From the NCBI GenBank assembly GCA_965240325.2, contig OZ251237.1, positions 1-64,000 on the forward strand: a stretch of 64,000 nucleotides of DNA. The letters run 5' to 3'. Shown one piece after another: positions 1 through 13,441 of the stretch. Numbering within the stretch: the first letter of the stretch is position 1; each line of letters opens with the position of its first letter. Position numbers and translations under genes: made by a program. Origin of the DNA: Rebecca billardiae RCC1528. Its lineage: Eukaryota > Protista > Haptophyta. A model generated the notes under the pieces. The model was not told the origin of the DNA, ran no database searches, and saw only the letters and a program-made list of their open reading frames with translations.

Positions 1-480
1 AATCATTCGGGGGGGAATTCGGTCACGAATCCTGTCTGCAACCGCTTTTTTAGCTGAAGTGGCGGCCTGGCGGGGCGGGTTCCTACCGCAGTTTATTTTA
101 TATATATATTATTACTACGACGACTCGGGACGAGTAACGACCAAGTGTACATCGAGTGCTAGGCAGCTAGCTACTTCACATCATCATCAATCAGAACACC
201 AAGCTCGACGCGTCGCTGCTTACACCGCTCACGAAGGACCGCCTGCTTATACTATAACTAAGCCCTTGACATGAATAGGCAATAGCGTAGCTATATATAT
301 ATATATTGATATATTAATATATAGCTGCTAATTATAAATGCATGCCCGTATGATGTTGATGGCTGCCGAGGCTTAGTGTGAGACAGCAGTAGTGAGTACG
401 GCGGTACATGTTCCGACACTACTTGTCCCGCGGTACTGACAACGCGCGGTATTTTACTATACTCGATCTGTATATATATA

Positions 481-3446
481 GGTAACAAATTGGATCCCTG
501 TCGGATCCCAAATAGGGCAGCGCGGAAGTCCGTTATGAGGGCCGCCATCGCCAGTGCGCCCCGCCGACACCCCCTCCGCCGTGCTGCCGCTCAAACTCGA
601 GCGAGTTCGCCCGACACGTTGTCGGCGGGCTCCCACGAGTCGGGCCACGGTTGCCCAGCTCCGTCCACTCCCTCCCAGCGCACAATGTAGCCGACGACAC
701 CGTCGCGTGTCTCCTTGCTCACAATGTCATCGACGGGGTACAGCTCGTCGTCGTCCTCGTCCCTCGTCGTCCTCGCAGCCACTGACAATGTCGCTGTCGT
801 CGTCCTCGTCGTCCTCGTCGTCCTCATCGAGCACCTCCTCGTCACTCTCCGACGCGCCATCGTCACCCCGACCCGTCCTGCCTCGCTCGGTGCGTGCCCG
901 CTTGGCGTGCGGTTGTGCATCGCTGGACGCAGCTGCCGGGTTGCGGATGAAGTCAGCAAGCGCGCGGACGAAGCCCTTGATGCGCTCGAGCGCGGGCATG
1001 CGCGCGAGAGAGCCCTGTGTGGAAGAGCGGATCACCTCGTAGCCACCCACGAGCGCAGCATCGCTCGCGCCGATGAGCGCGCCGACGGTCGGCCACTGCG
1101 CGCTCAGTTTGTTTGCTAGCTCGGCTCTGACGCCAACGTTGCCGCCGCTCACGAGCTTGTGCAGCGCGCCGAGCGGCGTGATGCTCACGATGCGCGGGTT
1201 GAAGATAAACGAGCCGCTCGAGCGCGCCGCCGCCACTCCGCCGCCGCCGCCGGCGCCGTCGCCGCCACCGCCGCCATCGCCGCCGCCGCCGCCGCTGTCG
1301 CCGCCACCGCCGCGCCCGCGCGCTGCCGCGCCCGCGCGCGCCGCCGCGCGCGGGGCCCGCGCACCATCAGTGCCGTCGTCGTCGTCGTCATCGTCGTCGA
1401 TGTCGGTGCCGTCATCGCCAGCGTCCCGCTCGTCATCAGACTCGGCCATGTGGTCCTCCTTCGCCTGTGCTTTGTCGACCATCAGCTGCAGGCGCGCCAC
1501 CGTGTACGACGGCGCCTGCTTGAGCGTCGTGATGAGCATATCAGCTCGAGCCGGCCAAATATGGGCCCGCCGACGGCGATGATGTGCAGGGAGTACCCGT
1601 CCGGGTCACCATGAAACAAACCTCGCTGCGGCGTCGGCCGTGCCCATCGTCTTCTGCAGCTCGGTCGCCTGGCACGCCGACGCCTCGCGCCGTGTTCGAG
1701 CTCCTCGCCGCTGCTCAGCACGTTCACCTTGGTGCGCGAGCCGAGGCGCTGGGAGATCGACGCGAGGAAGCAAGGGCAGCCGCGGATGACCGAGCGATGT
1801 GCGCGGTGCACCTTGAGCCGCCCGTGCCGCAGCTCCTCGGGTACGGGCTCGCCCTCGCCGTAGAGCCTCGCGTGCCAACGCGCCTCGCGCCAGAGGCGCA
1901 AGCTGACGCTGAGATCGAAATGCTCGCGCGTTGCGGCTGAAGATCGGCGCAAGGGTCGAGAGCAGCTGCAAGATCACGCCTCGCGCCTCCTTGCGCTTGG
2001 GCATCTCCTTGATCAACCCCGCGACGCGCGTCAACGCATCGCCCTGCTTGCCCATCAGCCGAGCCGCTCTCCGCCGCGCGGGCTCACGCGCGCTCTGGTT
2101 GGCGTCGACCCAGTCGCCCAGCCCGAGGGCGCGGTGCGCCCTTGTCGGGCTGCCCGGCAAGAGCACGTTCACGAGCTCCTTGACGAGCGCCTTGGCCGCG
2201 CGGCGCAACTCGCGCCAGTACGACGCGCCAATATCCGCGGGCGGCTTCGTGACATGCGCCGTGACCGGGCCCGACAGCTTCAGCAGCTCGCCATCCGCCG
2301 CGCCTACGGGGTTGGTGATGCCGAGCACGCGGAAGCAGAGGATGGTCTCCGGCGGCAGCGCGGGCTCGGCGGCGGGCTCTGAGGCGGGGGCAGCAGCGGG
2401 GGCGGCGACGGCGAGCGTGGAGAGCACGGACATGTGCGGCCATAGCCATGGCGCCGACGGGCGCGGGTCTGGCGGGATCTCCGACGGGAGCGAGTCGAGC
2501 CACTCGATGATGCTCATCGGCGCGCAGCGCACGCCGCGCTGCCGCTGCGAGCGGCGCGCACGCGCGCGCGCTTGCGCGCGCTCGACCTCGACATCTGGCT
2601 CGCGGGGCGGGATGCTGCAGCCGAACCAATGCCAGTAGAGCTTACGCCCGTGCACGCTCAGGCAAGTGCAGTGGGTCGTGTGAATCGTCGTCCTGGCCTC
2701 AATCGACACGCGCCAGCCGAGTCCCCGCACGCAGCTGTAGCCGCCACGGAAGGTCGGCCGCGCGAACTGCGTTGTTGAACACGGCGGGGTCCGAGGCGCC
2801 GAAGGCACCTGCAAGGGTGTGGCTGAGGTGGATTCTGACCCAAAGAGCCACCGCCTCCGTGATGCAGAGGGCGTACCAGCGGTCCTTCTCGAGCATGTGC
2901 TTCATGCCGTGAATGATTGAGGCAGCCTCAGTCTTGTCACAGCTGCGCGAGAACGACGACCGACCTTGCGACCAAAATGCTGGATTATCAGAGAGATGCC
3001 AGCAGGGCATAGCGTGCGCCGATTTTGGTCGCAAGGTCGCATCGCCTTCTTGAACTGTGCGCGCGCGAAGTGCCGGCTCGATTCGGGGATGGTGCGCAAA
3101 GATGCAACACGCGCACTCGGAGGTGCGGGGCAAGCACGGGCGCCGTGCGGGAGCGCGACATCGCGCTCCTACGAGTGCACCACCTGCCCACAGCCGAGGT
3201 GGCCCCGCGGCGGGCGTTTCAAGACCGCCCTCGGCTCGCGACGCGACGAGCTCGTCGATGCGGCTGCCCAGCGCGCTCTTGCCGGTTGGCGAGCGTTTCG
3301 ACCGGGAGCGAAGCGCGGCGCAATAAGAAGGCGAGCCAACCGCGGTCCGCTGATAGCAATGGCCAATACGGGATCGCAAATACTTATTGCGGGATCGTTT
3401 TGCAACGACTTCCGCGCCTGATCTGCCGCTCAAAGGATTTTTTACC
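481..3446 (-). mobile_element. Decayed or internally deleted TIR DNA transposon inserted in a (TA)n tract
   Basis: Left end GGTAACAAAT (481-490) and right end ATTTTTTACC (3437-3446) are inverted at 9/10. An 11-bp subterminal inverted repeat GCGCGGAAGTC lies at 520-530 and 3407-3417. (TA)n abuts both ends (471-480; 3447-3458). The interior is a frameshifted minus-strand ORF chain. Confidence 0.7.
534..3100 (-). pseudogene. Frameshifted transposon protein: transposase-like N-terminal segment, acidic/Gly linker and C-terminal chromodomain
   Basis: Coding-like segments pass across ORFs 2699-3433, 1606-2814, 1482-1952, 727-1539 and 591-959. The last reads LYPVDDIVSKETRDGVVGYIVRWEGVDGAGQPWPDSWEPADNV (chromodomain pattern Y.V..I...Y.V.W.G...SWEP..N). 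It joins the acidic tract through a 1-bp shift near 760. Boundaries are approximate. Confidence 0.6.
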
Positions 3447-3810
3447 TATATATATATAGCTATATAGATCGACGATATACGACTACGACGGAGCAGGCGC
3501 GACGACGATGAACTATCGCGTGCCGCGCGGCGGCATCATATATTGTCATCACTTTGCGGCGCGTCATTCATCAACGGGCAGCGCCGCTGCTGCGCCGTAT
3601 ACGTCGTAGCACAGTCGCGTCGTCATCAGTCTCAGCATCATCATCGTCATGACTCAGTACGTGAGAAGTGCGCGCAGTCTCAGTCATAATCAGTGTCCGC
3701 GGCGGCAGTCGGCCCAGCCGCGGCCCCGCTGGAGCAACTAGCACTGGTATCCCGATCCGCCCCCGGGTAGGCATCGCGCCACGGGCACGAGCTAGGGAGA
3801 CCATCGCTGC

Positions 3811-5277
3811 TCATCCCATCGTAGACCACGGCAGCACGCGCGGCAGCGACGCGACTCGCTCCGGCGGCGTGCAGCGTCGGTTGCCATCTGCCACACGACT
3901 CCGCCTCTGGCCGAGGCCGAGCGCTGCGGACTGCTCGCCGCACGCGTACACGCCACCGTCAGCGGTCGCATAGAGCGAGTGGGAAGCGGCGAGCGCGCAG
4001 TCGAGCACGCGGGCGTGCGCGAGCTCGGGCACTCGCTCAGGCAGGCGAGCCTGCGCTCCCAGGCCGAGTTGCGGATGATTCGTGTGCCCGAAGACGTGCA
4101 CGCTGCCGTCCGCTCCGAGCACAGCGCTGCTGTAGTCGCCGGCACGGGAGCGCATGGCGCAGGCGCCAGCGAGCGCCTCGATGCGCCTCGGCGTGTGCTG
4201 ATTGTCCTCGGAGCCGATGCCGAGTTGGCCGAAAGCGCCACTCCCAAACGAGTGCACGCGCCCAGCTGCGTCCACCACCAGGCTGTGCTCAGCGCCCGCG
4301 CTCACATGCACGGCGAGCACGCCCGCGAGCGCCTCGATGCGCCTCGGCGTGTGCTGATGCTGGTGGTTGCCGTGGCCGAGCCGGCCCATGTAGCCATGGC
4401 CAAACGAGTAGACGTCACCAACGGTCGAGAGCAGCAGCGTGTGAGCCCACCCTGCCGACATCCCACCCACTTGCACGCCGTCCAGCGCCTCGATGCGCGT
4501 CGGCTCCCACCGGTGCTCCGTGTCGCCGTGGCCGAGCTGGCCGTAGCCGTTGTTGCCCCAGCTGTACGCGCAGCCCGCGGCGGTGAGCGCGAGGCTGTGG
4601 TAGGCGCCGACACAGATGTGCACGACGAGCTCGTCGCGAAGGGACTCAATCGATTCGAACGACCGACGCGTCGCAATGCCGCCCAGCCCGAGCTGGCCGT
4701 GCCCGTTCTTGCCGCAGCCGTACACGGCGCCGGAGTCGCTCAGCGCGAGCAGGTGGTACTCGCCTGCTGCCACGGAGCGCACGCGCACTGCGCAGAGCGA
4801 GGCGACGCGCTGGGGCGTGCATATCGGCACGGTGGCCAATGCGGGATGCCCAAGTGCTGCCGGCGTGCGAGGCTCGCCCGTCAAGAGCTCCTTCTCCTCG
4901 CCGCACGTGTGCAGCGCGCCCTCCGCGTCCACAAACGCGCTCCAGCTGCTGTTGTAGCCGCTCGCGCACGCGATGACGCTGGCGTGCGCGGCGGCGATCG
5001 TCGCCACGCGGTCACGTGCGAAGAGCTCCTCGAGCCACGTGCACGACGCCGCGGGCAGCGTCCCGGGCAGCGCGTGCTCGTGGCCGCGCGCGCGTGCGCG
5101 CTCGCGCAGCGCGTGCTCGACCGCCGAGCTGGCGCAGCCGGGCGCGCCGCGGAAGAGGCGCGAGGCGGCATTCGCGGCGGCCAGATCGCGCGCGCGCTCG
5201 AGAAAGCCGAGCACGCGCGCGAGCAGCTCGGGCGGCAGCGCGCAGATCGTGGCGCCTGTCGCGGGGCGTGATGCCAT
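3811..5277 (-). CDS. F-box + RCC1-repeat protein (UVR8/HERC-like beta-propeller), paralogue 1
   Basis: F-box-like ICALPPELLARVLGFLERARDLAAA followed by repeated GxxGQLGHG...P..I..L....V..VSAGxxHSL units. Start placed at ATG 5277. Confidence 0.85.
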   Translation of the reverse strand: MASRPATGATICALPPELLARVLGFLERARDLAAANAASRLFRGAPGCASSAVEHALRERARARGHEHALPGTLPAASCTWLEELFARDRVATIAAAHASVIACASGYNSSWSAFVDAEGALHTCGEEKELLTGEPRTPAALGHPALATVPICTPQRVASLCAVRVRSVAAGEYHLLALSDSGAVYGCGKNGHGQLGLGGIATRRSFESIESLRDELVVHICVGAYHSLALTAAGCAYSWGNNGYGQLGHGDTEHRWEPTRIEALDGVQVGGMSAGWAHTLLLSTVGDVYSFGHGYMGRLGHGNHQHQHTPRRIEALAGVLAVHVSAGAEHSLVVDAAGRVHSFGSGAFGQLGIGSEDNQHTPRRIEALAGACAMRSRAGDYSSAVLGADGSVHVFGHTNHPQLGLGAQARLPERVPELAHARVLDCALAASHSLYATADGGVYACGEQSAALGLGQRRSRVADGNRRCTPPERVASLPRVLPWSTMG

Positions 5278-5464
5278 CACGCGGCGGCGCTCTCTCGCGC
5301 GCGGTCCTGGCTCCCTCCGCCTCGGCGGCGGGGCTGCTCGGTCCGGGGTGTTCAACTGGACGGACGAAGACCGTTTGGCCACGGCCAGTTGGCCGGGCGC
5401 CGCTCCAGTGGGGTGGCGGCCAAGCCAAGGCGTGAGCGACGGTGGCGGAGGGACGGCGGTCGAG

Positions 5465-6997
5465 ATGGCAAGCGCCGCTGCATTGCCGCGGCTCACGCTC
5501 GCCGACGTGGCGCCGGAGCTGATCGAGCGCATCCTCGCCTGGCTCCCCGCCGCGCGAGACCTCGCGAGCGCCAACGCCGCCTCGCGCCTCTTCCGCGGCG
5601 CGTCCGGCCGCGCCAGCTCGCCGGTCGAGCGCGTGCTGCGCGAGCGCTCGCGCGCGCGCGGGCACGAGCGCGCGCTTCCCGAGGCGCTGCTTGCGGCGTC
5701 GTGCACCTGGATCGGCGAGCTGCTCGCGCGCGAGCACGTCTTCCAGCTCGCGCTTGCGCACGCGCAGGTGGTGGCTTGCGGGGGCTTCATTTGCGATTTA
5801 TACGGGGTCGATCTATACGAGGCTTTCGAAGCGGTGAGCGCGTTCGTGGACGCAGAGGGCGGGCTGCACACGTGCGGCGTGGAAGAGCGGCCGGGGCGCC
5901 CTCCTCGCGCGCCGTGTGCGCTGGGCCACGGCGATGAGCGCCTTGAGCCGATGCACACGCCGACGTGCGTCGCGTCGCTCTCTGCGGTGCGCGTGGTCGC
6001 AGTAGCGGCCGGCTGGGCCCACCTGCTCGCGCTGAGCAAGGCCGGCGCCGTGTACGGCTGCGGCCGCAACTACCGCGGCGAGCTCGGGCTGGGCGACGGC
6101 AAGGCTCGATTCTCCTTCGCTTCGATCGCAGTACCTCGTGACGCGCTGGTCGTGGGCATCGCCGCTGGCGGCGAGCACAGCCTCGCGCTCACCGCCGCTG
6201 GCTGCGCGTACAGCTGGGGCAGCAACAGCTACGGCCAGCTCGGACACGGCGACACGAAGGACCGGTGGGAGCCGACGCGCATCGAGGCTCTGGACGACGT
6301 GCGCGCGGGTGGGGTGTCGGCAGGGTATGCCCACACGCTGCTGCTCCCGACTGATGGTGACGTCTACTCGTGCGGTGAGGGCAGCGGCGGCCAGCTCGGC
6401 CACGGCGACCAGCGTGATCAGCACACGCCGACGCGGATCGAGGCGCTTGCAGCCGTGCGCACCGTGCACGTGAGCGCGGGCTTACAGCACAGCCTGGTGG
6501 TGGACACGGTGGGGCGCGTGCACTCGTTCGGTCACGGCCACGTCGGACAGCTCGGCCATGGCTCTACACGTGGGCAGCTCCTGCCTACGCCCATCGCCGC
6601 ACTCGGCGGCGTGCGCGCTGTGAGTGCCAGCGCGGGGCCTGCTGGCAGCGCGGTGCTGGGCGCCGACGGCAGCGTGCACACGTTCGGGGAGAACGGGTAC
6701 GCGCAGCTCGGTCGCCCAGCGTCGGCAGACCCCCGCGTGCCGGTGCGTGTGGAGCTGCTGGGTGGGCAGCACGTGGCCGCCTGTGCGCTCTCGCACAGCC
6801 ACGCGCTGTACGTGACGGCCGACGGCTGCGTGCACGCGTGCGGCCATGGCTCTGCCGCCGTCGGCCGCAGGGTGGGGCCGCCGCCGGCAGCATCCGGAGA
6901 GGGCGACGGTGCTCGGCACGCGCCGATGGTGCGCATCGCGGGGCTGCCTCGCGTGCCCGTGCGCAGCGATGATGACGGTGGTGGCTTGCCGGGCTGA
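5465..6997 (+). CDS. F-box + RCC1-repeat protein, paralogue 2
   Basis: [25 protein letters not shown] plus RCC1 repeats. Colinear with the minus-strand paralogue; for example [15 protein letters not shown] is shared. Confidence 0.85.
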
Positions 6998-7158: not shown

Positions 7159-7305
<147 letters not shown>

Positions 7306-7961
7306 ACTTCTAACTACTGTCTAACTATCAGTGTCAGTCAGTGACGGCGTCACTGTTCGGACCGACTATATAACTCACAGCGCAGGATCGCCCGCCAGCC
7401 AGTACCGTAAGCATTTTCGGCGGACCCATTAAAAAATGCGTTAACTGCCGACCCGGCTCCCTCGCGAGCCGTTGGGTCGGCCGGTGGGCCGGCCGGCCGA
7501 CACCAAGATCGGGTTTGACGGAGGTGTGAAATGCGGCTCTTCGCGCGGCGCGGCGTCGCGAGCTCGCGGCGGCCTTGCGCCGATAGGCTCGGCTGGGCCG
7601 CGTCCGCGCGTGTGGATCACCTGCCTGATGCGTTCCCCCGCCTTTGCGGCGCTGCGCAGGCATCGCTCCGTCGCATCCCTCGTCCACCTGCACATCGTTT
7701 GCGCGGGCCGCCGCCGTTTCCAGACCAGGTGCGTGCAAAGCAGCGCGTAGCGCCGAGCCCAGTGGGGGAGCGCGTCTGGCGAATAAGTGGCGATGGAGGG
7801 GTTCGGAGTGCAGATGCCCGAAACCCGCATCACGTATCCTGCATCCGACGTTTTGACCATGCGCGCGCGCCCCGTCTGCTGCCTGCACGCGTGCGGCTGC
7901 GTCGCCCGCCACCGCCGCTCGCCGCGCGCGCAGAGCAACGTCGAAGACGAAGGTCGGGAAG

Positions 7962-8852
7962 ATGGGCAAGCGTGGTGCGCAGCTGCACAAGAACCGTGAC
8001 TCGATGTATCTTCACCCGTACACGAAGCAGATCCGGCAGCAGAGCGTGCTCGCGCGCGAGAAGCGCAACCTTGTCGAGCTGGCGCACGAGGCACTCGAGG
8101 CCGCGTGGGAGGCGACGCGCGCGGCTGGCAGCGCTCTCAAGGCGGCGATGGACGCGCTGCGCGCCGTGCTGCTCGCCCTCGGCTTGATCTCGTGCAGCTC
8201 CGCCCTCTTCGTCGCGCAGGTGCGCAACGCAGTGTGGTTCATGTGCGGCTCGCGGCGCGGCTCGGATGCACGGGCCTGGGGGCGCAAGCGGCTCGAGCCC
8301 TTCCCGCACGAGGCGCTCTACGCGCCCGAGATCGTCGCGCTCGGCCCTGTGGAGGTGGTGGCGCAGAAGGAGCGCACGGTGCGCACCATCGCCTGCAGCA
8401 TCCTCCCCAGGATCTCCGCCTTGCTCAACTTCGACGCGCGCGGCGTGCGCGCGGCCGGCGGCGCGCGGCAAACAAAATTGGGGTCGATCAACGCGGTCGT
8501 CTCGCTCAAGCTCACGCACACGCAGTGGCACAAGGCGTGCGCGCTCGGGCACCCCCGCGAGTACATCGACGTCGAGGCGGTGCTCGCGCGCGTCAACACC
8601 TCCGGCGCCGTGTTCGCGCCGAACGTGCAGCCCGCCGACCGCGAGCTCGTCGCGCGCTACCTGCGCACGCAGCCGCTCGTGTTTGAGCAGCGCGGCAAGG
8701 ACTTCTCCGAGGAGATGATGGAGGCGTGCGCGGAGATGATCGCGATGGCGCGCGAGGAGGGCCGCGACGAGGCGGAGGCGGCGGCGGCGACGACGGCGGC
8801 AGTCGCAGCGGCGCCGCCCCCCGCGGGCCCGCCTGCCGCACTCCGCTTATGA
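7962..8852 (+). CDS. Transposon ORF1, 296-aa protein of unknown function
   Basis: Open frame with strong GC3 codon bias inside the TIRs. Its stop TGA (8850-8852) overlaps the transposase ATG (8849-8851). Confidence 0.65.
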   Translation: MGKRGAQLHKNRDSMYLHPYTKQIRQQSVLAREKRNLVELAHEALEAAWEATRAAGSALKAAMDALRAVLLALGLISCSSALFVAQVRNAVWFMCGSRRGSDARAWGRKRLEPFPHEALYAPEIVALGPVEVVAQKERTVRTIACSILPRISALLNFDARGVRAAGGARQTKLGSINAVVSLKLTHTQWHKACALGHPREYIDVEAVLARVNTSGAVFAPNVQPADRELVARYLRTQPLVFEQRGKDFSEEMMEACAEMIAMAREEGRDEAEAAAATTAAVAAAPPPAGPPAALRL

Positions 8853-11800
8853 CATCGGTCTCCGCGGAGACCGAGGCGGCTGAGCAGCGACGCGCCGGCG
8901 CGCCCGCGCCGCCGCTGATCGCGGCGGGGCGCGCCGCGCCCGCGCCCGCGCCAGCCGCCCAGATCGAATCCTCGAAGCGGAGGCGGCTCGACGGCTCGCA
9001 CGACGGTGGCGCAACCTGCGCTGCCCCGCATGACGCAGCTGCCCGCGCGGCAGCTGCCGACACCTCGTGCCCGCCGCCCGAGCCCGCCTCCATGCCACCA
9101 CCACCGCCGCCGCCTCGCGCGGACGGCGCCCCGCCCTCGTCACCTGTCGACCCTCACCCCTCCACCGCCCTGCTGCCCGTGCAAGCCGCCGCTCAAGGCC
9201 CGCCGGCCGCGGTCGTCGTCGGCACGCCGATCGCTCGCCCCAACCGCCGCGCATCGCCCGCCGCCCGCACGCCCGCCGCCCGCACGCCCGCGCAGCCGCG
9301 CTCGACGCGCCGCACGCCGCTCTCGGCGGCGAGCACCGTGGCCGCGGACGGCAGCGCCGACGTGCTCGCGGCGCGCGTTGCCGAGCTGGCCGATGAGAAC
9401 GCGCGCATGAGCCACGAGCTGGCCCGGCTTCGCTGGGCCGATACTCAGCGCCAGCGCCTCGCCGACCGCGTGCGCGAGCTCGAGGCCACCAACGAGAGTC
9501 TCGTCGCGGACAAGGCCGACCTCGAGAACCTCCTCGCGCGCTCGCGCGCGCCCGGCGCTGTGCGCAGCCTCGAGCAGCAGCTGAGCGCTGCGCGCGCCGC
9601 CGCAGCAGAACGCGCGGCGGCGGCCGACGAGACGGTGGCGGCGCTCGAGGCGCGACTCGCTGCGGCCGAGGCCGGGCAGCGCGCAGCCTCCGCCGACGCC
9701 GCCGCGAGCAGGGCTGGTCGGCAGGCTGCTGAGCTCGCCCTCGCTGCTGCTGCTCAGCGTGAGGCGAGCGCGAGCGCGGCCGAGCGCGCGGCCGCGCTCG
9801 CGGCCGCGCGCGCGGAGGTCTCTGAGGAGCTCGGGCGGCTCCAAACGGACCTGGCCAAGGCGCGTGTGGCGACCGGTGCGGAGCACGGGAACGCCTCGCA
9901 GGCGCGCGCGCGGCTCGTGCGCGCGTGTGCAGAGCTCGAGGCCGCACGCTCCGCGCATGCGGTCGAGCTGGCGGCTTCGAATCAGCGCGCGGCGGCGGCG
10001 GAGGCGGCGGCGGCGGAGGCGGCAGCGGCGGCGGCGCACGAGCAGCGAGCAGCCGCGTCATCCCGTCAGCAGGTGCAGAAGCTCGACGGCGAGGTGACGC
10101 GTCTGCGCGGGCAGCTCGCACACGCGCAGCAGCAGGTCTCTGCTGCCCACGCGCCGCTCGCGACTCGGCACCGCTCTGACCGCCCCAACCCGGAGAGGCG
10201 ACGGCAGCGCCAGATCATTCACGCGCAGAACACGCTCAGGGAGGTGTGCGGGGGTGACGCCGAGCTGATCGCGGAGACGGCCGTGAGAGCGTTCCAGTCG
10301 TACGGCGCGGCGCGCGCGATCGCAGCGCACGTCTACGGCATCAAGCACGCTGCTGTCAAGTCCACGATCGACTTCTTCCAGTTCGAGGTCTTTGCGGCGC
10401 GCCGGCTCGCGGACTTCTTCTCGATCTCCAAGGTGTCCGGCCGCCTCTGGGACTGGCAGCGCGAGTTCATCTTCCGCCGCTACGACCCGGCCACCGCGGA
10501 GAACGGGCTGCTGACCGTGCTCAAGGGCGAGCACGGGCTCGCCACGCTCCGCCTCAAGCCGTACGTGAGCGCGGCGGGCATCAAGTCGCTCAACGAGAAG
10601 GAGGCGGCTGAGAACGGCCTCTCGATCGCGTACACGGAGAACGGCCGCGTCGCGTCCGTGGACACGGTGGCGGCGGCGCACAACGTGCTCCGGGCGTGCG
10701 ACAAGAAGGGTGCGTGCGCGCGGCCGACAGGCGCGCCGCGGCTCCTCGTCGGCTCGAGCGACGCGGGCACCGTCGCCAACAAGGGCAAGCAGCGCGACTG
10801 GACGTCGCTCTGCCTGCGCTGCGCGCACCGCTGCGACGGCAACTGCTGTCCATCGGCGGTGCAGCCGGTCGGCCAGGCGGCCTACTCCGACAAGAACTCG
10901 GGCCTCAGCGCCGGCTGGGCGCCGCACGTGCCGCTCTTCGACTTCATCGCGCGCTACGGTCTGCTGCCGTGCTGCGTCGCCCGCCTCGACGTCGCGCTCC
11001 ACCTCGACATCTGCCCCGTGCCCGACGCGCCTGCGCAGCGCGCGCGCAGCTCGGCCGCGGCCGCGGCCGCGCCCGCCCCGGCCGCGGCCGCGGCGCCCGC
11101 GCCCGCGCCCGCTGCGCCCACAGTGCCGGCCGGCGCCCTACCCGATGCCTTCAAGTGCGGCTGCGAGCACCCGGGGTTCGAGCCGTGCGACTTCGTGTAC
11201 ACCGGTGACCTCGCCAACCTCGTCGGGATGATGGGCCTCGGCTCGCACCGCACCGACCCGGCCAAGTACTCGATCCACAAGGTGAAGCTCGACGACGGCA
11301 CATGGGCGTGGCGCACGGTCGCCGACGCGATGCTCTACTCGCACTCGCTCGTCGGCAAGCGGTGCCCGTGCGGGTGGATCAACCACTCGGACGACGACGT
11401 GGAGGGCGAGCGCGACCGCCGCATCCACATGCCCTCCGGCCAGGCCAAGTCGGACGAGCTGCACGTGCATAAGAACTACTGGCTGCGGCCCGTGTTGTGG
11501 GTCGAGTTCGACCACTACCTGCTAGGCGTGATGCACTTCTGCCACAACACCTTCGACCAGTGGTTCGGGGCGGTGTGGAAGGATGTGGACACGCTGCACG
11601 AGGGCGACGCGAACTTCGTCAAGTACGATTTGGTCGCGGCGCTGGTGAGCATGGGCGTCACCTGCCTCAAGCCGGCCCGGCGCGACGGCAACGAGGTCGC
11701 CGTGCCATCGTTCAAGGGCGCGGACCTCTCGCTGATGCGCACCGAGCTCGGCATGCTGATGGCGCTGCAGATCGTGTACGGGGTCGCGGACTTCTTCGAC

Positions 11801-12568
11801 GGCGAGGGCGAGGGCGAGGCGGGCGGCAGCGACGGCGCGATTGCAGCCTCGGCCGCTAACGTCGAGGCAGTCGAGCACCTCGAGGCGCAGATGAGGGAGC
11901 GACGGCGGCTGCGCGGCGGCAGCAGCTCGAACGCGCAAGCCGCCGCACGCGCCGCGCGCGAGCCGGCTCTGCGGCGCGCGTGTGCGGCGCTGATGGCGTT
12001 GTGGGAGGTGCAGCGCCTGGTGAAGGACACGAGCTACGACGACTCGACCGAGCAGTCCCGCCGCGCGCACGCCGCCGCCTACCGCACGGCCTTCGAGGAC
12101 TTCGTCACCAAGCTCAAGGCGATGACGAGCAAGGACGTGCAGTCGCAGTACATAACGGAGGGGCTCGAGGTGATGCCCGACCTGATCGAGCGGTGGGGCA
12201 AGGTGGTGGCGTACGTGAACGAGCAGGTGCAGGAGCACATGGTGAAGCTGACGAAGGACTTCGCTCGCCGCGCGAGTGACCACTCCATCGAGCTCGGCTC
12301 GTACGTCGCCCACCTCGCGAGCGGTGCCAGCATCACGCGCAACCGTCGCTCCACTGCTGTCGGCCAGGTGCTCCGACGGCAGTGCGATGCGCTGTGCGCA
12401 CTCGAGCGCGCGGCGCAGACCAACAAGACGGCGCATCAGAAGCTGGCCGGCTCGAAGCGCCACATCGCGCACGAGGACAAGCCGGCGGTCACGCTCGAGG
12501 CTGACTGCGACCAGCTGTGGGAGGATCTCAAAAAGCAGCCCAAACCGTCGGGCCGGGGCGCGGACTGA
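8849..12568 (+). CDS. RAG1/Transib-like DDE transposase (1239 aa from ATG 8849) with Pro-rich N-terminus and long coiled coil
   Basis: Ordered motifs LVGSSDAG (D at 10760), FVYTGDLANLVGMMGL (D at 11207), RPVLWVEFDHYLLGVMHF, FKGADL and YITEGLEVMPDLIERWGKVVAYVNEQVQEHMVK (E at 12233). These parallel RAG1 core ESCDG, GTGYDEKLVREVEGL, KPF..SIDALH, MNGNF and [32 protein letters not shown]. Confidence 0.8.
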   Translation: MTSVSAETEAAEQRRAGAPAPPLIAAGRAAPAPAPAAQIESSKRRRLDGSHDGGATCAAPHDAAARAAAADTSCPPPEPASMPPPPPPPRADGAPPSSPVDPHPSTALLPVQAAAQGPPAAVVVGTPIARPNRRASPAARTPAARTPAQPRSTRRTPLSAASTVAADGSADVLAARVAELADENARMSHELARLRWADTQRQRLADRVRELEATNESLVADKADLENLLARSRAPGAVRSLEQQLSAARAAAAERAAAADETVAALEARLAAAEAGQRAASADAAASRAGRQAAELALAAAAQREASASAAERAAALAAARAEVSEELGRLQTDLAKARVATGAEHGNASQARARLVRACAELEAARSAHAVELAASNQRAAAAEAAAAEAAAAAAHEQRAAASSRQQVQKLDGEVTRLRGQLAHAQQQVSAAHAPLATRHRSDRPNPERRRQRQIIHAQNTLREVCGGDAELIAETAVRAFQSYGAARAIAAHVYGIKHAAVKSTIDFFQFEVFAARRLADFFSISKVSGRLWDWQREFIFRRYDPATAENGLLTVLKGEHGLATLRLKPYVSAAGIKSLNEKEAAENGLSIAYTENGRVASVDTVAAAHNVLRACDKKGACARPTGAPRLLVGSSDAGTVANKGKQRDWTSLCLRCAHRCDGNCCPSAVQPVGQAAYSDKNSGLSAGWAPHVPLFDFIARYGLLPCCVARLDVALHLDICPVPDAPAQRARSSAAAAAAPAPAAAAAPAPAPAAPTVPAGALPDAFKCGCEHPGFEPCDFVYTGDLANLVGMMGLGSHRTDPAKYSIHKVKLDDGTWAWRTVADAMLYSHSLVGKRCPCGWINHSDDDVEGERDRRIHMPSGQAKSDELHVHKNYWLRPVLWVEFDHYLLGVMHFCHNTFDQWFGAVWKDVDTLHEGDANFVKYDLVAALVSMGVTCLKPARRDGNEVAVPSFKGADLSLMRTELGMLMALQIVYGVADFFDGEGEGEAGGSDGAIAASAANVEAVEHLEAQMRERRRLRGGSSSNAQAAARAAREPALRRACAALMALWEVQRLVKDTSYDDSTEQSRRAHAAAYRTAFEDFVTKLKAMTSKDVQSQYITEGLEVMPDLIERWGKVVAYVNEQVQEHMVKLTKDFARRASDHSIELGSYVAHLASGASITRNRRSTAVGQVLRRQCDALCALERAAQTNKTAHQKLAGSKRHIAHEDKPAVTLEADCDQLWEDLKKQPKPSGRGAD

Positions 12569-13441
12569 CGAGTCACGGTCGCGCGGCGCCGCGGCCGCTC
12601 CGATCCGCGGCGGCGGAGACAGCATGCTGATGATGATCGATATGATGATAAGCGAGGCGCTGTATGACGCACGCATGCCTGGCGATATACCGCCGCCAGC
12701 CAACCAGGAGACCATCAATAACGCTGGTCGAGTCTGTGAGTGGTAGCACACAAGCCACGCCGCGACCGGGCGGCCGGCGAGCACGATCGTCTCCCGTCTT
12801 CGATCTGCTTTCTCGCACGCGGCGCGGGGTGTCGCGGGGCCTGCTGCTCGGAGTAGCAACGTGCTGAGGAGTGCTGATGAGTGTCAAATCGAGTGCACGC
12901 GCACTTTCGGCTGCCGCGCCGGCCTCGTCTCCGAGGAAGAAAGGAGTACTGTGCACATCCATAAAAAATGGTCAGCACGGGCGCTCGAGCCGCCCGAGCG
13001 GCACGCGACCTCAACTGCACCTGTCCCGATCTCGAGCTGTGGGCAGGGCGGGGTGGCTTGGATCGATGGGGAGACGCTCGGGGAAAATCGCCGGGGTAGT
13101 CTGCGACTGCGCGCGCACGCTCCCCGCCCTTCCGCGCGTCGCGCGCCGCCATGCTGAATTTCCGCGAGCGGGCGCGTGCTGGGGGGGGCCCGTAACGACA
13201 TCTTTCCTGAAATCTTGCGCTGTGCTATAAGATGCATGCGAGTTACCGAGCTGACGTATACTTCAGGCTCAGCTGAGCCTGTCTCATCGTCGACCGGCGG
13301 ATCGAGTGTGATCGACGAGTGGATAGTCGATAGACGGCGTGAGGCGGTGATGCCATTCTCACTCAGATTCTGACGACGGACACGGTCATCATATAACATA
13401 TTGGCTATTGCTCCCAGTGGCCCGCTGATATCATTCATTTG

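Follow-up and report, generated by a model that had tools for sequence, protein, structure and literature searches.

The 64,000-nt stretch of the haptophyte alga Rebecca billardiae RCC1528 analysed here (assembly GCA_965240325.2, contig OZ251237.1, positions 1-64,000; hereafter the window, whose numbering is used for all element coordinates) carries at 7376-13224 an intact-looking cut-and-paste DNA transposon of 5849 bp, set in a very GC-rich host genome (~70% GC). Taken as a whole, this insert is best explained as an autonomous DDE transposon belonging to a rare pavlovophyte and marine family that forms a separate lineage of the CMCT clade of transposases, a reading to which we give a probability of about 80%. 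It is a new lineage of a recognised transposon group, a rare algal branch, and not a new kind of element. The original prediction, made from the letters alone, had proposed an undescribed algal branch of the Transib/CMC group, and this is still the best reading in view of the predicted fold, the D/D/E residues, the partner open reading frame (ORF) and the absence of a sequence match to any described family.

The transposase and its predicted fold

The second of the two ORFs of the element, ORF2, encodes the transposase, with the following features.

8849-12568, + strand: ORF2, transposase, 1239 aa, uninterrupted from its ATG, which overlaps the ORF1 stop as ATGA
8975-8986, + strand: KRRR, candidate nuclear localisation signal in the disordered N-terminus, a function proposed from sequence only
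9356-10258, + strand: Ala/Glu/Arg/Leu-rich coiled-coil-like segment, residues ~170-470, by composition profile, with weak bZIP and SOGA matches
10568-12286, + strand: predicted RAG1-like core, residues 574-1146, aligning to RAG1 471-978 (AF2 model, Foldseek, VIA)
10760-10762, + strand: first catalytic Asp candidate D638, motif SSDAG, strand beta-1; codon GAC; D in 7/7 aligned relatives
11207-11209, + strand: second catalytic Asp candidate D787, motif TGD, just after beta-4; codon GAC; D in 14/15 aligned relatives
11363-11371, + strand: Cys-Pro-Cys, which in most relatives is CPxC, a C(2)C motif (family alignment)
11534-11545, + strand: HFCH (His-x2-His), where the helical insertion domain begins (alignment and model)
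12221-12235, + strand: EQVQE, with E1125 invariant (21/21) and E1129 conserved in 17/21; E1129 corresponds to RAG1 E962 by offset at the end of the structural alignment

A template-free AlphaFold2 (AF2) model of ORF2 residues 500-1239, computed with the relatives as alignment, reached a mean predicted local distance difference test score (pLDDT) of 70.6 and a predicted template modelling score (pTM) of 0.69. When this model was compared with the PDB by Foldseek, the top 43 matches were all RAG1 core chains (best E 6.6e-7 over ~600 columns), followed by BbRAGL and HzTransib. Structural alignment by VIA-align gave RAG1 a Z of 15.6, superimposing model residues 75-646 on RAG1 471-978 with 391 residues aligned, a span that by the RAG1 domain boundaries runs from the DDBD through the CTD. 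Amphioxus RAGL (BbRAGL) followed at Z 14.0 and HzTransib at Z 13.0, while the next fold, that of the P element transposase, reached Z 7.8. A search independent of Foldseek, covering 48,161 representative chains, likewise returned Z >= 8 for RAG1, RAGL and Transib only. The suggestion of a RAG1/Transib-type enzyme is thus borne out at the level of the model, in which a RAG1-like fold with an RNase H-like core is predicted and stands alone at the top of two PDB searches.

The uninterrupted 1239-aa frame announced in the original prediction is present as described, and so are the three acidic residues singled out within it: the codons at 10760, 11207 and 12233 read GAC, GAC and GAG, the peptide quoted for comparison with RAG1 occurs in the translation, and these residues are conserved across the relatives. 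The model puts D638 on the first strand of the RNase H-like sheet, D787 immediately behind the fourth and E1129 in a C-terminal helix, locations at which an RNase H-like DDE triad would be expected. The third candidate, the GAG codon at 12233 (E1129), has a conserved neighbour one helical turn earlier, and the catalytic Glu would be E1129 or possibly E1125. A further conserved cluster, LPCC...C...CxC, precedes the second Asp. Within the RNase H-like domain there is also an in-frame Ala/Pro-rich low-complexity stretch of ~32 residues (11024-11120) with pLDDT <50; its interpretation as an unspliced intron was set aside since the reading frame is kept through it and variable insertions are found in the relatives at this position; it is better regarded as a low-complexity loop. 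As to the coiled-coil-like region, which was called by composition and not by a dedicated predictor, a similar one occupies the equivalent position in two relatives from Pavlovales sp. (P0013 and P0006).

At the level of sequence the protein stands apart. ORF2 gave no Pfam match beyond noise, Transposase_21 included, and a comparison of all 43 aligned family members with Pfam likewise returned noise only, with neither RAG1 nor Transposase_21 appearing at E values up to 10. Searches of PDB sequences with the single protein (phmmer) and with the 43-member profile (hmmsearch) yielded nothing relevant, and RAG1 and Transib chains were missing, for the profile even at E 10. When 1.84 billion cluster representatives were searched exhaustively with phmmer, only 42 relatives came up, their sources being Pavlovales sp. 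and marine metagenomes; of the ten that were scanned in full, none (0/10) contained a Pfam domain. Word-indexed protein searches with the ORF2 core, the family profile and ORF1 returned nothing beyond P0001 and ORF1 itself. Among the relatives found, the family is restricted to pavlovophyte-type algae and marine samples.

Boundaries, ends and flanks of the element

The limits of the insert are defined by the following features, of which the terminal inverted repeats (TIRs) and the putative target-site duplication (TSD) are the outermost.

7374-7375, no strand: left copy of the putative 2-bp TSD (CT), CT being found on both sides of the insert
7376-7388, + strand: left TIR, CACAGCGCAGGAT; Logan contigs L003 and L004 start at the same point, L004 with a different flank
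7403-7410, + strand: subterminal motif TACCGTAA, 28-35 nt in from the left end; a CGTTA-type motif occurs equally far from the right end and from both ends of the relative L011
13212-13224, - strand: right TIR, reverse complement CACAGCGCAAGAT
13225-13226, no strand: right copy of the putative 2-bp TSD (CT), CT being found on both sides of the insert

The 13-bp TIRs beginning CACAGCG that had been claimed do exist at 7376 and 13224, but they are imperfect, CACAGCGCAGGAT and CACAGCGCAAGAT agreeing at 12 of 13 positions. The heptamer-like character of the ends calls for a similar adjustment: CACAGCG is close to the heptamer of the recombination signal sequence (RSS), matching it at 6 of 7 positions, but this likeness shrinks to CAC[A/T]GC once the relative described below is brought into the comparison. 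The proposed CT duplication is found at 7374-7375 and 13225-13226, and longer duplications do not fit, since the 3-, 4- and 5-base flanks mismatch (ACT vs CTA, TAACT vs CTATA); in this one copy a 2-bp match of the flanks would arise by accident with a probability of 1/16. Both flanks, TATAACT to the left and CTATAAG to the right, are AT-rich. The element is present once in the window. It sits in a small AT-rich island of the ~70% GC genome, and a perfect (TA)n tract of ~142 bp (7161-7302) ends 73 bp upstream of its left end.

A CGTTA/CGTAA-type motif was observed 28-35 nt from all four of the ends compared (7403-7410 and 13190-13197 in the window, 470-477 and 6367-6374 in L011), a comparison that comprises two elements, the window copy and L011. 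The wider pattern TTTC.GG...AG...CGTTA is common to the right end in the window and to the L011 ends. The CGTTA-type motif may constitute a second transposase-binding block, making the end bipartite. Arrays of subterminal repeats like those of plant CACTA elements were looked for in the element and not seen.

Relatives of the element

The most informative relative lies on a 6676-nt marine metagenome contig (Ga0181565_10011449, here L011), which contains a complete element of 5957 bp at 444-6400 bounded by 33-bp perfect TIRs starting CACTGCTTTGCC (CACTG). Its ORF1 homologue is 296 aa long (913-1803; 31% identity, E 4e-25, hhalign probability 99.5), and downstream of it follows the transposase ORF (2059-4926), whose ORF2 core is 31-45% identical. 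This element resembles that of the window in gene order, in size (5957 vs 5849 bp), in its CAC[A/T]GC termini, in the CGTTA motif ~30 nt from the ends and in its AT-rich left flank. The two differ in the TIRs, which are perfect over 33 bp in L011 and match at 12/13 positions in the window copy, and in that the L011 ORFs are parted by an untranslated gap instead of overlapping as ATGA, ORF2 changes frame in its C-terminal part, and the 2-bp flanks do not match. The C-terminal part in question (P0016, 170 aa, 4674-5435) is read in a frame other than that of 2059-4926, an arrangement seen in five independent contigs (L001, L007-L010), which suggests either a short intron or a fixed frameshift in transposases of the L011 type.

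In two loci of GCA_026770615.1 (L005 and L006), a genome that a preprint assigns to Pavlovales sp., an ORF1-like segment precedes an ORF2-like one, matching the gene order of the window element. The gene models deposited for these loci (P0013 in L005 8001-13325, P0006 in L006 8001-11928) fuse the ORF1-like domain and the transposase core in one protein, laid out as ORF1-like domain, low-complexity and Ala/Glu/Arg-rich region, and core. The ends of both elements are unreadable owing to adjoining runs of N. A TIR scan of L001 and L002 found no ends, while the divergence of L001 and L010 at ...CAGTG is explained by the L011 element ending there; P0007 and P0020 lie on short contigs without element ends.

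Mobility and length of the target duplication

Evidence that the element moves comes from outside the window. The exact ORF1 protein recurs in two Logan assemblies (ERR14847148 and ERR14847151), and the Logan contigs L003 and L004, with 99.96-100% identity to the window, each start at the left end of the element. Over 2454 nt L004 matches the window at 100%, and its left flank differs, the bases preceding CACAGCG being ATAT in this contig, T in the other, and AACT in the window. Contig breaks located exactly at the left end are the behaviour expected of an assembly graph at the edge of a repeat, implying at least one further near-identical copy elsewhere, and the left boundary is thereby independently supported. 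The right boundary has no such independent support in the window copy; ten small ORFs close to it or in the flanking DNA, looked up as exact sequences, led to no contig that spans it. At the level of the family, three different right flanks were found for the L011-type element in L001, L010 and L011, all diverging directly after ...CAGTG, which shows that the family occupies several (at least three) insertion sites. The left flank of L004 (ATAT) and that of L011 are AT-rich. Judged from its sequence, the copy in the window, with its intact ORFs, matched ends and a near-identical copy at another site, appears to be autonomous and recently mobile.

The left flank of L011 would pair with the right flank of L010, a pairing that is in itself uncertain, as either CA or CATCA, and the (ATC)n repeat at this site makes the two options indistinguishable. 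We somewhat favour the view that the family makes a 2-bp duplication.

ORF1 and the gene arrangement

The first ORF of the element is a conserved partner of the transposase.

7962-8852, + strand: ORF1, 296 aa, conserved partner protein or N-terminal domain; coding signal GC3 (GC at third codon positions) 0.92; homologues upstream of the transposase in L005, L006 and L011

Its GC content at codon positions 1/2/3 (0.71/0.51/0.92) follows the same signature as the ORF2 core, indicating that it is truly coding, and its homologues in the three loci share 27-35% identity with it. The AF2 model (pLDDT 66) predicts a mixed alpha/beta protein. ORF1 has no Pfam match, kelch included, and its model finds no PDB match above Z 5.8 by Foldseek or in a wide VIA search. 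The proposed two-ORF layout with a non-kelch partner therefore holds, ORF1 being coding, conserved and not kelch-like, and the RAG2-like kelch partner that characterises ProtoRAG has no counterpart here.

At 8849-8852 the sequence ATGA contains both the stop of ORF1 and the start of ORF2, an overlap that is not kept in L011, and the ORF2 frame is open further upstream, to 8726. Between ~8700 and ~9200 the GC content is equal at the three codon positions, so the junction is either low-complexity coding or non-coding sequence. ORF1 and ORF2 may yield two proteins or one spliced product.

Placement of the family

The CACTA-Mirage-Chapaev-Transib (CMCT) clade (Kojima 2025) unites EnSpm/CACTA, Mirage, Chapaev, Transib, Plavaka, ESTA as well as Lanisha (PMC12730594). 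Its members share CA..TG termini, TSDs of 2-5 bp and a structure-based similarity to RAG1, together with a Cys/His signature of C(2)C followed by H(3-4)H; one of them, ESTA, makes TA TSDs and matches RAG1 by HHpred (PMC12730594). The window element has CA..TG termini, a TSD within the 2-5 bp range, a similarity to RAG1 on the basis of its predicted structure, such as HHpred gave for ESTA, and, between the second Asp and the Glu, first a Cys pair and then a His pair; its CAC... termini combined with a 2-4 bp TSD, the latter from one copy, also agree with the narrower CMC description. The Cys-then-His order fits the CMCT signature and may mark a zinc site, although the spacing differs: the family has H(2)H where CMCT has H(3-4)H, and has it ~55 residues after the Cys pair instead of near the Glu, while the window copy has CPC in place of C(2)C. 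The conserved 296-aa ORF1 and the lack of a sequence match to the models searched are further departures from CMCT.

Comparison with RAG1, ProtoRAG and Transib gives a similarly mixed picture. The predicted multi-domain core, in which an RNase H-like DDE domain is combined with a large helical insertion before the catalytic Glu, is shared with these systems, as are termini starting CAC and, with ProtoRAG, the two-gene organisation; the RAG1-core-like DDE fold expected of a Transib is recovered by the model (HzTransib Z 13.0, RAG1 Z 15.6). Transib TIRs begin with a CACAATG-like heptamer, after which come a spacer and a second conserved block; the window element begins CACAGCG and its relative CACTGCT, with a CGTTA-type motif 28-35 nt from all four ends of the two elements compared. 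Unlike these systems, the family shows no detectable sequence similarity to Transib or RAG1 in the Pfam and PDB searches, a partner that is not a RAG2-like kelch protein, a coiled-coil-like region before the core, and an algal host. Its TSD is 2 bp in the window against their 5 bp, only CT being duplicated where a 5-bp TSD would set TAACT against CTATA. The last point is not decisive because the feature varies within Transib, for which 5-, 3- and 2-bp (TA) duplications have been described (bioRxiv 10.64898/2026.08.26.747230). Indeed, with 2-bp TSDs known both in CMCT and in Transib relatives, a RAG1-fold enzyme producing a 2-bp duplication is not unprecedented. The family alignment shows no His where RAG1 H937 and H942 should fall, positions placed by alignment offset.

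The claim that the element fits no described lineage thus stands insofar as no described family was matched by sequence, but the combination of features is less exotic than had been supposed, CMCT already covering TSDs of 2-5 bp and CA..TG termini. Peculiar to the family are the absence of sequence similarity to the models searched, the conserved ORF1, the long coiled-coil-like region and the altered Cys/His spacing. It is best placed as a separate lineage in the broad CMCT assemblage, being neither Transib proper nor a RAG ancestor, the sequence comparison having covered Pfam and PDB models. No paper linking haptophytes with such elements was found in the literature searched.

Several observations weigh against this placement. 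It draws on the predicted fold and the features of the element, with no sequence-level match to RAG1, Transib or EnSpm models, and since the PDB contains no structure of a CMC transposase, the fold cannot separate Transib from CMC. The TIR and TSD are by themselves statistically weak and not above chance: when ~1 kb on either side of the ORFs was searched, 60% of shuffles contained at least one 12/13 inverted pair, and 10% contained such a pair with identical 2-bp flanks. The 2-bp TSD was observed in a single copy, that of the window, and the flanks of L011 as assembled (CA on the left, AT on the right) show no 2-bp duplication, though this contig may be chimeric. As for the candidate zinc ligands, the CPxC found ~52 residues after the second Asp in most relatives is CPC in the window copy, and the conserved MHxxH, an H(2)H motif ~55 residues after the Cys pair, is a long way from the catalytic Glu, which is not so in RAG1.

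Alternative explanations

The same evidence could be accommodated by a true but very divergent member or sister of Transib/RAG1L, closer to Transib than to CACTA, Mirage or Chapaev, in which the TSD has been shortened to 2 bp. RAG1, BbRAGL and HzTransib are the best and only strong structural matches, CACAGCG agrees with the RSS heptamer at 6/7 positions, and 3-bp and TA duplications have been reported in the Transib lineage (bioRxiv 10.64898/2026.08.26.747230). The structural ranking is nevertheless uninformative in this respect, there being no CMC structure to compare, and the 43-member profile finds no RAG1 or Transib chain at E 10, just as none of the 43 members (0/43) matches Pfam RAG1. 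Moreover, the ends of the relative read CACTGCT, leaving only CAC-GC conserved, and the His pair is not where RAG1 H937/H942 should lie by alignment offset. A Transib affiliation of this kind is unlikely. A more specific version, in which the element represents a deep haptophyte-borne sister lineage of Transib/RAG1 with a bipartite end (a CAC-heptamer-like terminus, a ~20 bp spacer and a CGTTA-type block) and a required non-kelch ORF1 partner, is a long shot, but if true it would mean that two-component RAG-type transposition has a longer history and greater variety than one would gather from ProtoRAG in animals.

Another reading is that the element is no new lineage but a member of a CMC-type family described before (non-plant EnSpm, Mirage, Chapaev, ESTA, Plavaka or Lanisha) and represented in neither Pfam nor the PDB; this is quite unlikely. 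In its favour, Mirage, non-plant EnSpm, ESTA and PlavakaA typically combine CAC termini with a 2-bp duplication (PMC12730594). The C(2)C motif after the second Asp in the relatives is in keeping with such an origin, and the sequence comparison covered Pfam and the PDB. These points must be set against the failure of all 43 members to match Transposase_21 or any Pfam family even at E 10, and against the scarcity of relatives, only 42 in 1.84 billion cluster representatives, with a Pfam domain in none of the ten scanned in full. In addition, we know of no report of an ORF1-type partner or a coiled coil in EnSpm, Mirage, Chapaev, ESTA, Plavaka or Lanisha. An explanation without mobility, in which a host or domesticated gene pair happens to be flanked by inverted ends, would draw on the fact that the 12/13 TIR and the CT flanks could be due to chance and that the element occurs once in the window. 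It is scarcely credible given the near-identical copy with a different left flank, the relative with 33-bp perfect TIRs and three right flanks, and the two contigs from other samples that both break exactly at the left end.

Proposed mechanism

For the preferred reading, an autonomous transposon of a separate CMCT lineage, the steps of transposition can be sketched by analogy with RAG1 and Transib. ORF2 would act as the transposase, comprising a disordered N-terminus with KRRR, a coiled-coil-like segment and a ~570-residue RAG1/RAGL/Transib-like core, and ORF1 would serve as a conserved accessory protein or as an N-terminal domain spliced to ORF2. A transposase dimer may bind the CAC[A/T]GC termini together with the subterminal CGTTA-type motif, nick the element border and form hairpins on the flanking DNA, thereby releasing the element. 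Insertion with a short stagger into AT-rich DNA would then leave the 2-bp duplication.

Implications

RAG1/Transib is the model case of a transposase turned into a key host enzyme, and structural relatives outside animals and fungi are few. The pavlovophyte family, which is predicted to keep a whole RAG1-like core despite having no detectable sequence similarity, and which combines it with a different partner and a stagger of probably 2 bp, extends the range over which this fold is known. It offers a natural comparison for studying what determines duplication length and end recognition, and the copy described here, being intact-looking and recently mobile-looking, lends itself to direct testing. 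More generally, the family illustrates how standard domain annotation overlooks a real transposase in algal genomes.

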